DNA of 64,000 bases, from assembly GCF_031769215.1 (NCBI RefSeq), contig NW_026782366.1, positions 186,001 to 250,000 of the forward strand, written 5' to 3'. Shown one piece after another: positions 28,340 to 44,472 of the stretch. A program made the position numbers and the translations under genes. Every line of letters starts with the position of its first letter. The stretch's first letter is position 1. The notes under the pieces were generated by a model, which ran no database searches, was not told where the DNA came from, and saw nothing but the letters and a program-made list of their open reading frames with translations. Origin of the DNA: Ylistrum balloti. Lineage: Eukaryota.

Positions 28340-31300
28340 TCATCGTCGGTTGTATCCACCACCACTGTTGTTGTATCCACCTGCTATAGTATAAATATAG
28401 AATATAGAATAATATAACACATTCAAAGCTCTCTATAATTCATAAATGTCTTATCCTCTTCCAAATTTCCCAAATGTTTTAATTTCTGTCTTTAACATCA
28501 TTCACTGGGTTTTATGCTCTAAATAAACCTCTATAAACTAAAACTTCACTATGAAATGAATATGATATTGTTCTCTTTTTATTATCTTAAGAGTTTTTTG
28601 GGGAAAAAAAACCCAACTCAACTGAAGAACCATCATAAATTAATATGAATGATATAGCTTCATAGCCTTATTGTGCATAGGAGCATATTGCAAATTAACA
28701 CAGGTGCCTTTATATATTAGTGAACCACATGGGACAAATGATAAACTGAGTCATACAATAAAACAACCTTACATGTCTGATATCTGAAAGTCACTTAGTG
28801 GCCATATTATGAAATATGTTTTGTCCAAGCAACACTCAGTATTTACTGACAGTATTAAATATTCAGAAGAATCTACATCTTAATTCTGACATCAACATGT
28901 GAAAGCATTTTTCCGCTGATGTCTTGACAAATCAGAATTTTCAGAATTTGTTCCAGTATTGGTCAACATTATGATTGAAATACTTGAAGCTTTGTATAAA
29001 ATCCATATTTATCAAAGTCAAAAATCTTTTAATTCATTGTGACCATGTACCCAGATCTTCCATCAAGGTTTTGCACCAACAGTAACAGATTATTTTCAGT
29101 TCACATTTCATTACCACTCAAAATACAATATTAAAACTTAAGTTCAGTTTATTTGAACCACTGGATGGAGGAGAAAACAATAAAAAATTTAAGAAAACAT
29201 TTTAAAAATTTTGTTAAAATCATCAACAAAGTAAACTTAAAGGACATAAACTTGTGCTAAATGAGGAAACACCATATCACTGAATCTACCCATATCCAAT
29301 AGGAGAAAATACAGAATATCTATGCTATTAAACACAAATCATTAACCAGGATAGGACGAAGCATTATCAGAATTAATTAAGACAAGTTCTTACATCCATA
29401 GGGTCCCTGTCCACGGTTAGAGTAACTGTTCTTCATGGCGCCACCTCCATAATTATCTCCATAATTCTGCCCAAAATTACCACCATAGTTGTTGCCGCCT
29501 AACAATTAGAAACATTTAGATAACAAGATCAGTAACAATCAGAAACAATGCGTAAACAAGATCCATAGCACAAATAATTGGTTAAAAAAATCAGCAACAC
29601 TCATAAAATCAACAAAGAACTGTCAATAACGTTTAAAAATTCTGTAGTCACCTGATAAACGTATAGTGTAGGACTATCAATACATGAAGAGTTGAAAACT
29701 GAACGATCAAGTACAAAGTATTTCATGTGACAAACAATTAAGTGGAATTGTAATCTATTAACAATAATCTCTCCAAACACAACATTACTAAAACATGGGA
29801 AAACACTGCACACATGTATATTCACTCCTCATTTTTTCCTTCATTTGGGAAAAATAACACTGCTTAGCTAAAGACAAAATACTCACTGTTGAGATAATCA
29901 AGAAAAACACAAAGAAAAAATATTGTTATAACTGGTCAAGTTCAACTTGCTATTTTCCCATTTTTTGATGATTATTATAAATAAACAAGAGGAAAAACCA
30001 AGCAACAACTAGTTACTACACAGATGCAATGAGAAGCAGTTTTATGAGAGGACCTCCAAATCAATAGCCAATAACTCTGAAAATGAAGGTAATGAAGATT
30101 TATCGATGAAGCAGTAGTTCAATACTAAAATTAAGGCAGTAAATCTGATGTGAATGAAGGTATGAGCTTTACAGTCACTGGTGTAGGTCACCACAATGAT
30201 ACAAATACTTTGATGGAAAATGCACATACTGGCAAATATGGATATATACAAAGCTAACAGTATTTCACCTTGGTTACCATATCCGCCACCGTAGTTGTCA
30301 TAGCCACCACCACCACTGTTGTTCTGGTTCCATCCACCCCCTCCTCCTTGGTTACCGTAGTTGTTTCCATATCCACCACCACCACCTTGGTTTCCATAAT
30401 TGTTTCCAAAGTTTCCTACCAAGAGTAAATATTTGTAAACATGAATGACTCAACTGAATCTTCCAAATTTAATTATCATATTTCATAGCGCAGAAATTCT
30501 ATATCAATTCATTACATAGATTCACATTTATCGAGACATTACACATAAATTATCAATATTTTTCAAAAGCAAACTGACAATATTTCTTATTTTTACATCC
30601 TAATTACCACAATTGAAATCACAAACGAATAAACAAAATGTCAAGCACTGTTACAGATATATTAACATCTGCAAAAGTTTTAACATCGGTAAAATCTGAT
30701 AAAGTATAAACATATGAAAAAAAGTAAGTCAAAATTTTGAAAGGTTAATACAGATGTAATTGGTGTGAACAAAACAAATGTGTGCTTCCATATACATAGT
30801 GCAGTGAATTCCTTACTGAGAATTTAAATGTAGTGAAAGTTTCCTGTAAAAAATATTGCTTGGGGGAGGGGCAAAATGTACACTTACCTTGATTGTAACC
30901 ACCCTGGTTGTAGCCACCTTGGTTCCAATCATTAAATCCACGACCTTTTCAAGTAGAAACCTCAAATGAATTCATATTCAACTTGACTTAATTCACTGTA
31001 TGAAACTGTTTAATCTTTCAACTGTGATATTGCTAGCCTGAGGACAAGACTAGGGTCAACTATATATGGATGGTTATTACTTTGTTGGAATCCTTTAAAA
31101 CAAAACCGAAACAAGTATTACTTGTGCCCAGAAATTTGAATGCACCTAAAGTGTTCTCTTCCCTGAAATAAGTACTGAAAAATTACAAATGATTGAAAAT
31201 GTAGACTGTACCTCCTCCACCTCTTCCTCCCCTTCCCCCTCCTCGTCCTCCACGACCACCGGAGTCTCCTCCTCGTTGATTTTCCTTGGCAATAGCCTTC

Positions 31301-34300
31301 TTGACTTCAACATCCTTTCCATTTAGGTTAAAGAACTTCTTCACTGTAATTGAAACATTTTCAAAAATTTCAATTGCCATACAAAAAGAATTGTCAAATA
31401 TAACAATTCTGGTAGCAAATTGTCAAATTGATATAGAGGGAGGCTCTAAACAATTGCAGTTAGAAAATAATTCTCAAGAAATAACAATAACACACTTTCA
31501 ACGTTCAAATCCAAGACGGCTGGAGATCAGGGACCAAGGAGAACCTTCATATCAAAATTTGAGAAAATGATCATCCAGATCTCATAAAGAAATGGTAAAC
31601 AAACTCTACAAATCAAAATCAAAGATGTCTGCCTTTTGATCATGTTGATCTACTAATCATTCCCAAAATCATTTGGGGCTGCAGCATCCTCCATTCTCCA
31701 GGGATTGTAATAACTTTTGCTCTCTGCACCCATTGAACCTATCATGGCCATATTGAAGGTTCCATATGCATCACCTTGTGAACACGATGAAAATACAAGT
31801 TTGATCTCTTGATGTAAATCATATGAATCTCAAAGTTGCAAAATGGTATATTGTAATGGCTTTGAAGTTGGGTGTCGCTCCTTTGTAATCTTCAAAAGGA
31901 GCGCAACAGCATGTAATGAAACTGGTAAAAAACGGAATTCATAAAATCTGAAACCAAATTGGTGCAAATTCGAAACGGAAAATCATTGGCCCTACCTATG
32001 TGGGGCATTAGCCAGTAACTGGCTGCAGGTCATTGGTTTTTCTCTGGGAACTTTGGCTTTCCTTAACCAACCAAACCTGCCACATCCTTAAATGACCATG
32101 GCTGTTAATAGGACGTAAAGCAACAATAAACTAATCCACCCAAAATGAAATGGGCAAAACTAAGGACAAACAGGAAACTATATGTGAAATTTGGTAGGGG
32201 CCCATTTTGTACTTCTAGAAAAAGCGAAAAAAATCTTAATTGTAAAAATCCAAGATGGCCACCTGTGTTTCTGATCGAACCCAAATTGTTTCTGATCAGA
32301 ACAAAAATCAAATGGGCAAAAGTATGTCCAATGGGAATCTACACATGAAATTTTGGAAAGATCCATCCAGTACTTCTCAAAGTATAGCAATTACAAATAT
32401 TGTTTACAGATGGACCACAGACATAGGGCGATTTGAACAGTCCTCCATCATCAGATGGTGTGGTGATAAATAAAAATTGATTAAAAGTTTAGAGAAATTT
32501 ACTTCTTGGGGACAATTAATACCTTGTAAACTGATCTACTTAAAAGGACTAAATTTAATGTCTATAAAGTATGATATGAAATGATTACATCGAGAAAATT
32601 GCAGTTATCAAGACCATCTCTTTTCCTCGCATATACCCCAATCTGGAATATTTTAAAATACAAAGTGTCTAATTTTAAACTCTGATGTCTTCAAAGCTTA
32701 GCCCTATACTTACAAACACATTTGTCAACAGAATCAGTATCAAGAAACTCGACAAAGCCAAATCCTTTCACTTTGTTGTTTTCCTTGTCACGAATAAGAT
32801 CCACACGCTCAATGTTTCCATAAGAAGCAAAGATTTCCCTAACTTGTTCTTCAACGGTGTCATCCTTCAAACCACCAATGAACATCTTCTTTGTTGATTC
32901 CTGAGGCTCATTGAACTGCCAGATAAATTATGCTAAATCATCTAACAGCAATATACAGATAAGCGTATCAAGATGCTTAAGACAGATTTTAGTGATTCCC
33001 CTGCACAACCTATTGTATTTGGAATAATATTTCAACACAACTGAATGAGAAGAAGAAACGCAATTCTTGATTGTAAAATTCTTTGGGAAATGCTCAATTA
33101 TAATTTGTAGGAGATTAAATAACACAGATACAATAATGTAAGGCTCAATAAAAGATTTAGTCAAAATTACACATTTTGCAACAAGCAGTCAGAGCTTTAG
33201 TTTTTTCAAAAAAAAAAAAGAAAAGATTTTTCACTAATAAGAACATATTTGCAAAATGTTAATTTATTAAGCAGCATCATAGACACTGAAGCACTGATAT
33301 TTTACAGAAACTTATTCCCTTCTTAATCGCCCTTACCTCTCTTGGCATTGCCCTTTTTGTCTCCACATCCCTATTGTTAATCTTGTGAGGTCGATTTTCT
33401 TGAGAGACATCTACCTCAGATGCATGCTTGTAAGTAATGAACCCAAAGCCTCTTGACCTGGAGTATTCAATTAATTTTTGTATTTTATCTAATTCTCATA
33501 AAAACAACATTAAAATAATTCATTATGAAGCATCTACATTGTATTACATTACATTAAGATCATATCATCACATACAATTTGGAAAATAAGCGAGAAACTA
33601 AATTTTGTAACTTGTTGAAGGCAATAATGCCAGAATTTCAAACTAGTTAGTGCTCATCTTGGTCATCAGGAAAACGCAATCTTTCAAAACTGTCTTGGGA
33701 ACAAGGTCAGAAAAAAAAAAAACAAAAAACAAAAACAAAAAATTGTTGGAGTGTTAAAAAACAATCATAAAAGTTTCAGGATATAATTTTATTGGATTAG
33801 AATACCTTTTTGTATTAGGATCTTTCATTACAACACAGTCAGTGATCTCGCCCCACTGCCCAAAATGCTCTTTCAGGCCTTCCTCTGTAGTCTCGTAGCT
33901 TAAACCGCCGATGAAGATCTTTCTGAATTGTTCAGCTTCTGGATCCGGTTCCGTACGAGGATATTGTTGACGTCTTTGTCCTCCTCTGCCATGGTTTTGG
34001 TACTGTTTCAAAAGTTTTCAAATGATTTATCCATTAAAGTATGGACTCGAGTATCCAAAATTTTGTATACAATTTTGTATGTCAAGTCAAATAAATACAG
34101 TAGGGTTATATAGGTAACAGGAGAACTATAAAAAAAAAAATCACATTCAGAAGAAATGCAACGGTATTGCTGCGTACCTAAAAGAACTCTTATTTTACAA
34201 CAGTTCGGTTGAACAGTCTCGTCTGCCAATATGTAAATTTCTGCTACACAAAATCCTGTCATGTTTTATCAGTAACATTGTTTATACTTAATACTAGCTA

Positions 34301-44200: not shown

Positions 44201-44472
44201 TGGTTACATGATTTGACACTGATTAACTACCATTAAAATTTTACATTTCAACCAATATTTGTACATTTAGCGTAAAGCTGTTGCTAAAATAACGGGGCGT
44301 TTTATTTTTGTTTTATAGGAAAGACAGTGATGAAGCTGACTTAGTACCTGCAAGACAAGCAAATGTTAAATGTCCGCAGATTGTTATTGCATTTTATGAA
44401 GAGAGGCTCACCTGGCACACACACAATGATAATGAGGAAGACGAGAGTAAAGAAGAAAGTGCAAAATCATAA
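38250..44472 (+). CDS. CBX1: Heterochromatin protein 1 / chromobox protein (CBX1/3/5 family); start codon unresolved
   Basis: Exons 38250-38437, 40664-40820 (alternative donor 40832), 42608-42708, 44319-44472. Chromodomain [39 protein letters not shown], basic hinge, chromoshadow [61 protein letters not shown]. The symbol is family-level. Confidence 0.94.
38750..39165 (+). mobile_element. Non-autonomous bivalve-type element with two internal repeats of about 157 bp (pearl/HINE-like)
   Basis: Starts tttttatgcttccccttttgaggagcatatagt. Internal units begin gtctagagc (about 38820) and gtccagagc (about 38977) and share aacagg..tcaacat.aaact, tagatct and aagaac..acactctttt. Ends ggagcataa..acggcccttgtt. 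The family label is inference. Confidence 0.6.

Follow-up and report, generated by a model that had tools for sequence, protein, structure and literature searches.

The stretch of Ylistrum balloti DNA analyzed here (64,000 nucleotides, referred to as the window) very probably contains the scallop copy of an ancient head-to-head hnRNPA-HP1 gene pair, with an intergenic segment that would act as an unmethylated promoter region for both genes. The vertebrate descendants of this pair would be HNRNPA2B1-CBX3 and HNRNPA1-CBX5. An hnRNP A1/A2-type gene occupies the minus strand, its coding part running from 34897 to 28340; on the plus strand, an HP1/CBX1-3-5-type gene codes from 37968 to 44472. The two are immediate neighbors, oriented 5'-5' and diverging from a 1.57-kb stretch at 36100-37670. 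No further gene, tRNA, or Rfam family was found between them, an Rfam search of 27-46 kb gave 0 matches, and no copy of 36100-37670 was found elsewhere within the window. An earlier note had claimed a divergent pair of a minus-strand hnRNP A-type gene and a plus-strand HP1 gene, which is confirmed by Pfam domains, PDB sequence matches, and intact GT-AG gene models; the outer limits of that note, 28340 and 44472, are the stop codons of the two genes. The features of the locus are as follows.

28342-28340, minus strand: stop codon of hnRNPA
34002-33806, 33457-33337, 32915-32714, and 31343-31212, minus strand: main coding exons of hnRNPA (Pfam, PDB matches, GT-AG)
30944-30888, 30415-30269, 29498-29394, and 28380-28340, minus strand: main coding exons of hnRNPA, continued (Pfam, PDB matches, GT-AG)
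34895-34941, minus strand: predicted upstream hnRNPA exon of 47 nt, its 3' end being the start codon, ATG 34897-34895 (donor scan)
35901-36200, minus strand: candidate non-coding first hnRNPA exon, with donor GAA/GTAAGT after 35901
36400-36407, no strand: palindromic ETS-core pair TTCCGGAA (motif scan)
36568-36576, plus strand: YY1-like AAGATGGCG (motif scan)
36957-37068, plus strand: candidate non-coding first HP1 exon, with a good donor, GAG/GTAAAT, after 37068
36966-36971 and 36992-36997: further CCGGAA/TTCCGG cores (motif scan)
36974-36981: E2F-like TTTCCCGC, within the candidate HP1 first exon and beside ETS cores
37229-37237: second YY1-like copy, AAAATGGCG (motif scan)
37950-37970, plus strand: predicted HP1 exon of 21 nt, its 3' end being the start codon, ATG 37968-37970 (donor scan)
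38250-38437, plus strand: HP1 exon with the acidic tail and chromodomain start (Pfam, PDB matches, GT-AG)
40664-40832, alternative donor 40820, plus strand: HP1 exon with the chromodomain end and hinge (Pfam, PDB matches, GT-AG)
42608-42708 and 44319-44472, plus strand: HP1 exons with the chromoshadow domain and stop (Pfam, PDB matches, GT-AG)

Both gene models were curated by hand, and every junction in them is GT-AG. The hnRNPA model, with two Pfam RRM_1 domains on the minus strand, encodes 334 aa in 9 coding exons whose junctions are also in phase. In phmmer comparisons with PDB sequences, the RRM exons best matched hnRNP A1/A2B1 (E values of 1e-26 to 1e-28), with weaker matches to hnRNP D-like (1e-16 to 1e-22), Musashi (1e-14), DAZAP1 (1e-11), and hnRNP A/B (7e-10). 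The product has two RRMs, then an RGG box, and then a tail rich in Gly, Asn, and Tyr: a run of RGG follows RRM2, Gly accounts for 59 of the C-terminal 145 residues, Asn for 27, and Tyr for 15, and an R-x-x-x-P-Y near the C terminus was judged by eye to be a PY-type nuclear import motif. Judged from these matches and domains, the gene is of the hnRNP A type. The HP1 model (204 aa, 5 coding exons, all junctions GT-AG) has the Pfam domains Chromo and Chromo_shadow on the plus strand and is organized as an acidic tail, an N-terminal chromodomain, a K-rich basic hinge, and a C-terminal chromoshadow domain. The best PDB sequence matches of its chromoshadow exon are CBX5/CBX1/CBX3 (E values of 1e-17 to 1e-21), which identifies the gene, by sequence, as HP1 (CBX1/3/5) type.

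The first recognizable coding exon has no in-frame ATG in either gene (the RRM1 exon of hnRNPA and the chromodomain exon of HP1), so small upstream exons ending exactly in ATG are predicted for both. The 47-nt hnRNPA exon would combine a strong acceptor (ttatttcag) with a strong donor (ATG/GTAAGT) and join 34002 in phase 0, and the 21-nt HP1 exon, with the donor context GCCATG/GTAGGT, would join 38250 in phase 0. In human A2/B1, too, a small exon that precedes the RRM1 exon carries the start codon, an arrangement that the scallop hnRNPA gene, as predicted, appears to share. These exons are relevant to the correct annotation of both genes. Other possible donors for the hnRNPA first exon are present at 36325 and 36770.

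The intergenic stretch at 36100-37670 contains 58 CpG in 1,571 bp, an observed/expected ratio (o/e) of 1.21 versus 0.37 in the gene body of hnRNPA and 0.28 in that of HP1, where GC is the same 35%; the CpG-retaining segment of about 1.7 kb claimed earlier is thus borne out. Both bodies have a TpG/CpA excess of 1.29-1.33. The segment's o/e is compatible with a long-term unmethylated state, and its GC of 0.349 is below the vertebrate island criterion. Since that criterion is about 50% GC, the segment at 35% GC is no GC-rich island by vertebrate standards. The densest CpG cluster is 36957-37068 (o/e of 2.3 over 36800-36999), and a dip at 36600-36799 (o/e of 0.65) is flanked by two CpG peaks. On the hnRNPA side, CpG depletion begins below about 35.9 kb, and the depletion of the two genes confines the two transcription start sites to roughly 35.9-37.7 kb. 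We presume from this composition that 36100-37670 is a germline-unmethylated promoter region containing both start sites.

The following history probably accounts for this pattern. The hnRNPA and HP1 genes would be broadly expressed housekeeping genes with germline-methylated transcribed bodies, as CpG depletion of the bodies by itself suggests, and methylation would have caused their CpGs to decay to TpG/CpA over time. The intergenic segment of about 1.6 kb, being unmethylated and probably containing both start sites, would have kept its CpGs while its GC stayed at the genome's 35%. In oyster, methylation climbs sharply past the transcription start site and promoters are generally without it; bivalve genes in general combine a CpG-normal promoter with a body depleted of CpG (PMC4378273). 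The CpG pattern of the scallop segment is that of any expressed, gene-body-methylated bivalve gene, and the locus resembles a generic bivalve housekeeping gene as known from oyster (PMC4378273) in its TpG/CpA-rich, CpG-depleted bodies and CpG-normal promoter. Unlike such a gene, one presumed-unmethylated stretch appears to serve two genes in the scallop. A second CpG-retaining stretch of like kind is present in the window at 48.5-49.5 kb.

We compared the occurrence of 17 motifs in 36000-37700 with that in 500 dinucleotide shuffles. The YY1-like AANATGGCG occurs twice, a count reached in 1 of the 500 shuffles, the ETS core CCGGAA four times (2/500), and the E-box CACGTG twice (18/500). The NRF1 half-site is within chance in this comparison, and TATA-like words are as frequent as expected by chance. 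Because 17 motifs were tried, even the top enrichments are only modestly significant. The earlier note had listed YY1-, Ets-, and E2F-like motifs; the YY1-like and ETS motifs exceed the shuffles, and the single E2F-like TTTCCCGC does not, its count being within chance (reached in 60/500). The segment would most likely be a bidirectional promoter without a TATA box, or else a pair of divergent core promoters separated by about 0.8-1 kb, with the usual housekeeping factors (YY1-type, ETS/GABP-type, E-box/MYC-USF-type, and perhaps E2F) as predicted drivers; we infer that the motifs are shared and the genes co-expressed. Human HNRNPA1-CBX5 has a 0.6-kb TATA-less shared promoter with YY1, E2F, MYC/USF (E-box), and GABPA motifs, a set described also for bidirectional promoters in general, and the two human genes show no significant co-expression in the NCI-60 panel (PMC4721113). 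With its YY1-like, ETS-core, and CACGTG sites and one E2F-like site, the scallop segment resembles that promoter as far as sequence matches go, but its start sites are predicted to be 0.8-1.2 kb apart.

Head-to-head hnRNPA-HP1 pairs are also present in two further invertebrate genomes. At one locus (L005/L006/L007), 3.4 kb separates the RRM1 exon from the chromodomain exon, with a CpG o/e of 1.0-1.4 between them; at the other (L013), the gap is 4.7 kb, with a CpG o/e of 0.9-1.2 at 7.5-9 kb. The same gene-order check did not find the pair within 10 kb at L001, L002, L017, and L011/L012 or within 18 kb at L009/L010/L016, that is, near 5 of the 7 other informative loci. Either linkage has often been broken or these loci are paralogues, so that conservation appears patchy or blurred. 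No 10-12-mers beyond those expected from shuffles are common to the three invertebrate paired intergenic regions.

HNRNPA2B1-CBX3 is one of the conserved ancestral microsyntenic pairs (CAMPs) listed by Irimia et al. 2012 (PMC3514665). To qualify, a pair had to be linked in 4 or more of 11 metazoan lineages; 593 of the 595 CAMPs were inferred to be present at the origin of Bilateria. The same study gives a co-expression of r = 0.84 for this pair, describes 5'-5' pairs as the best conserved and co-expressed, and reports that the survey's mollusc, Lottia, with its slowly evolving genome, retains most CAMPs. The scallop locus is a further case of the listed HNRNPA2B1-CBX3 pair and has the 5'-5' orientation and close spacing that typify the "co-regulated" class. 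The list implies a head-to-head pair in at least some of amphioxus, echinoderms, hemichordates, annelids, and brachiopods. Cbx and Hnrnpa have also been employed as markers linked to Hox, the outgroup being their amphioxus orthologues (PMC10927551). The age proposed earlier for the pairing, before the protostome-deuterostome split, is therefore supported by the two further invertebrate genomes and by the CAMP listing. The ancient pairing is real, but it has been catalogued since 2012 (PMC3514665) and is not new; its evolutionary weight here is small, as one mollusc and two invertebrate examples are added to a pair already listed as bilaterian-ancestral.

That the pairing arose convergently in molluscs and vertebrates, or that the scallop genes are not orthologous to the vertebrate pair, is extremely improbable. 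We found no point in favor of it, and both families recur in like orientation, 3.4-4.7 kb apart, across three invertebrate genomes; the PDB sequences that match best are those of hnRNP A1/A2B1 and CBX1/3/5 in particular, the CAMP catalogue lists the pair (PMC3514665), and the Hox-linked marker use of Cbx/Hnrnpa relies on amphioxus orthologues (PMC10927551). A more serious but still doubtful alternative is that two independent unidirectional promoters are chance neighbors, their adjacency reflecting ancestral gene order that decays slowly in a genome with little rearrangement, and no joint regulation. The predicted first-exon donors at 35901 and 37068, about 1.2 kb apart, the CpG dip between the two peaks, the patchy conservation of the pair, and the lack of conserved intergenic sequence all fit this explanation, as does the retention of most CAMPs in slowly evolving genomes such as Lottia (PMC3514665). 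It sits poorly with the retention of the 5'-5' arrangement at the scallop locus, at both other paired invertebrate loci, and in two human paralogous pairs, with the conservation and co-expression of 5'-5' pairs, including HNRNPA2B1-CBX3, in the CAMP survey (PMC3514665), and with the human CBX5-HNRNPA1 promoter, where only 0.6 kb holds sites common to both genes (PMC4721113).

The earlier note's proposal that this CpG-retaining, AT-rich segment could be an "ancestral chromatin-opening element" is not supported as stated by the sequence features described here. The activity of a ubiquitous chromatin opening element (UCOE) is defined by transgene assay, as silencing resistance regardless of integration site, and its features include a methylation-free CpG island spanning dual divergently transcribed housekeeping promoters (PMC2629730, PMC4330381). 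We consider it unlikely that the segment is a true UCOE-type dominant anti-silencing module whose function is ancestral and the reason that the genes remain paired. The divergent orientation of the two presumed housekeeping promoters fits the definition, as do about 1.5 kb of CpG-normal sequence that is presumably free of methylation (PMC2629730, PMC4330381), and the pair recurs in distant animals (PMC3514665). As in human HNRNPA2B1-CBX3, the source of the A2UCOE, genes of the hnRNP A and HP1 types diverge from a CpG-normal segment of similar length, about 1.5 kb, which in the scallop is presumed to span both promoters. Unlike that locus, the scallop segment has 35% GC and no GC-rich CpG island, and the methylation background of the genome is mosaic, not global. 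The CpG pattern is generic to bivalve promoters (PMC4378273) and recurs at 48.5-49.5 kb, the paired loci have no common intergenic sequence, and the pair was not found within 10-18 kb at 5 of the 7 other informative loci. It is correspondingly improbable that this AT-rich 1.6 kb is a molluscan anti-silencing element and that such activity, over co-regulation, has kept the pair together since the bilaterian ancestor. If it were, UCOE activity would be possible without a GC-rich island. The segment could have modest value as a tool where transgenes are to be expressed stably in bivalves, a difficulty in practice: a native, presumed dual housekeeping promoter of 1.6 kb, orthologous to the A2UCOE source, is a sensible first candidate.

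The divergent arrangement of hnRNPA (an hnRNP A1/A2-type gene) and HP1 (a CBX1/3/5-type gene) around a CpG-retaining stretch, as described in the earlier note, is confirmed by domain and PDB identities, by the strands of the two genes, and by the CpG observed/expected ratio (o/e) in the stretch and on either side. The limits set there at 28340 for hnRNPA and 44472 for HP1 prove to be the two stop codons.

Coding segments of the two genes.
34017-28343, minus strand: hnRNPA, stop-free segments encoding RRM1 in two halves, RRM2 in two halves, an RGG run, and a long tail rich in Gly, Asn, and Tyr
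38220-44469, plus strand: HP1, four segments encoding an acidic tail and chromodomain, a basic hinge, and a chromoshadow domain (Pfam)

Pfam scored RRM_1 on both RRM exons of hnRNPA. Against all PDB sequences, these exons matched hnRNP A1 and A2/B1 with E values of 1e-26 to 1e-28, and hnRNP D-like, Musashi, DAZAP1, and hnRNP A/B scored much more weakly; the best PDB matches of HP1 are CBX5, CBX1, and CBX3. With splice sites curated by hand, the gene models reach 334 amino acids for hnRNPA and 204 for HP1, every junction in both being GT-AG and in phase. Each gene also carries a candidate small alternative-splicing difference: a tandem acceptor (tatagCAG/, the slash marking the splice site) at the last hnRNPA exon (28380-28386, minus strand) and two in-phase donors separated by 12 nt where the HP1 hinge exon ends (40820/40832, plus strand).

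At 34% GC, the window contains no N and has a CpG o/e of 0.49 overall. Dense CpGs span 36113 to 37666, and the segment 36100-37670 contains 58 CpG at an o/e of 1.21 and a GC content of 0.349, compared with o/e values of 0.37 on the hnRNPA side (28340-36000) and 0.28 on the HP1 side (37671-44472). Both sides alike have a TpG/CpA excess of 1.29-1.33, which is the mark of methyl-cytosine decay. The stretches at 34.0-35.9 kb and 37.7-38.2 kb are CpG depleted and therefore probably transcribed as first introns, which would place the start sites of both genes within about 35.9-37.7 kb, where a donor scan offered a candidate first-exon donor on each side.

Candidate first-exon donors from the donor scan.
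35901, minus strand: hnRNPA side
37068, plus strand: HP1 side

Because CpG density drops at 36600-36799 inside the segment, two core promoters 0.8-1.2 kb apart would be as likely as one shared core. A young transposon as the source of CpG retention was rejected, as neither a repeat copy in the window or the fetched loci nor a transposon open reading frame (ORF) was present; no second copy of the segment was found within the window, and Rfam gave no match over 27-46 kb. Inside the presumed first intron of hnRNPA lies an inverted repeat of about 150 bp (35154-35299 and 35588-35741, 70% identity), which may be a decayed MITE-like insertion.

An in-frame ATG is absent from the first recognizable coding exon of both genes. 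In other invertebrates, the HP1 ATG sits within the chromodomain exon, and in several of them an acceptor lies immediately upstream of the RRM1 coding part of hnRNPA. The donor scan returned two small, well-formed candidate exons, each with ATG as its last three bases, which join in phase 0 to 34002 in hnRNPA and to 38250 in HP1.

Predicted upstream exons.
34941-34895, minus strand: hnRNPA, acceptor ttatttcag/, end ...CACAAAATG/GTAAGT
37950-37970, plus strand: HP1, acceptor tgtgcag/, end ...TTTGCCATG/GTAGGT

In both genes, the start codon thus appears, from splice signals and reading frame, to sit at the very 3' end of a tiny upstream exon (ATG/GT), directly before a phase-0 intron, which would explain why the first domain exons have no in-frame ATG. 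The contigs of the only sequencing run matching the segment are genomic, with 11 SNPs across 37073-38500 and no joints. Within the RRM1 exon of hnRNPA, an out-of-frame ATG in strong Kozak context (aaaaccATGg; 33992-33990, minus strand) opens a 30-codon ORF and could be a decoy, upstream-ORF-like start or the sign of a one-base assembly error.

We counted 17 motifs over 36000-37700 against 500 dinucleotide-preserving shuffles. The YY1-like AANATGGCG occurs twice, a count reached in 1 of 500 shuffles, and the ETS core CCGGAA four times (2 of 500), including the palindrome TTCCGGAA at 36400; CACGTG occurs twice (18 of 500). Of the YY1-, Ets-, and E2F-like motifs previously claimed for this segment, the first two are therefore enriched, modestly because so many motifs were tried, whereas the single E2F-like TTTCCCGC is within chance (60 of 500). 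The set matches published descriptions of the human hnRNPA1-CBX5 promoter and of bidirectional promoters generally, in which YY1, E2F, MYC/USF, and GABPA motifs occur and a TATA box does not (PMC4721113).

Other animals were surveyed with exon-sized protein queries, matches being exon-sized ORFs, and the fetched loci were then searched by tblastn with the window exons. None of the matched contigs looked human, as all carry the invertebrate-type KWKGYPE or non-human RRM1 residues. The head-to-head pair was found in two further loci. One, represented by three JGI metagenome contigs of a single animal (L005/L006/L007), has the RRM1a, RRM1b, and RRM2a exons on one strand and four HP1 exons on the opposite strand across a 3.4-kb gap, with a CpG o/e of 1.0-1.4 in the gap versus 0.26-0.46 in the hnRNPA body. 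The other, an ENA contig of another animal (L013), has different intron positions, a 4.7-kb gap, and a CpG o/e of 0.9-1.2 at 7.5-9 kb. No 10- to 12-mers were common to the three paired intergenic regions beyond shuffles, and by this sequence comparison it is the arrangement that is conserved among the paired loci, not a sequence element.

Searched from the HP1 side, L001, L002, and L017 had no hnRNPA partner within 10 kb; searched from the hnRNPA side, L011/L012 had no HP1 partner over the same distance; and the pair was absent within 18 kb in L009/L010/L016; six loci (L003, L004, L008, L014, L015, and L018) were too short to judge pairing. These unpaired loci may be paralogues or true losses. 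Pairing in humans extends to only two of the three HP1 genes and two of the four hnRNP A genes. In L017, from a relative of the L005 animal, Kelch/beta-propeller and Vps5-type ORFs upstream of HP1 (2385-8301) replace hnRNPA; either the pair is broken there or this HP1 is a paralogue. In L002, an invertebrate locus (10001-11500), the CpG-normal stretch begins at the ATG-bearing HP1 chromodomain exon itself and the upstream sequence is depleted, which suggests a different promoter arrangement or an HP1 paralogue.

The proposal that the pairing is older than the protostome-deuterostome split is supported by published surveys. Irimia et al. 2012 compared 17 metazoan genomes and listed neighboring pairs whose linkage holds in 4 or more of 11 lineages; they inferred that 593 of 595 such pairs existed at the origin of Bilateria, found 5'-5' pairs to be the best conserved, and named HNRNPA2B1-CBX3 as a strongly coexpressed example (r = 0.84) (PMC3514665). 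Studies of vertebrate duplication also routinely use Cbx and Hnrnpa as Hox-linked markers, taking the amphioxus orthologues as the outgroup (PMC10927551). The presplit origin is therefore right and already catalogued, and the ancient age of the pair is known, not new. When a Hox-paralogon neighbor was sought (NFE2-type or SNX10/11-type), no large bZIP exon was found in 20-28 kb.

Nor is the CpG pattern of the segment special. In oyster, methylation climbs sharply past the transcription start site and stays high along the gene body, targeting housekeeping genes and generally sparing promoters (PMC4378273). The window itself holds a second CpG-normal stretch at 48500-49500 (o/e 1.23) adjoining strong depletion at 50-64 kb (o/e 0.18), presumably, from CpG content, the promoter and the transcribed body, respectively, of a further methylated gene; none of the 77 stop-free segments of 44.5-64 kb had a Pfam match. 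The most likely mechanism is predicted to be an ordinary unmethylated housekeeping promoter region common to the two divergent genes, which would serve both. The proposed ancestral counterpart of the human A2UCOE, a ubiquitous chromatin opening element (UCOE), would be an analogy: divergent orientation and CpG o/e fit, but GC content does not. Our literature search found no paper on an invertebrate counterpart of a UCOE.

A broad CpG-normal region also occupies 5-20.5 kb of the window; inside it, a patch of 49-51% GC carries an intact 339-amino-acid Tc1/mariner-type transposase ORF (DDE_3, HTH_Tnp_Tc3_2; 14118-15137, plus strand). Downstream of the hnRNPA 3' end lies a tRNA-Ala (CGC) gene or tRNA-derived element (22526-22599, plus strand).
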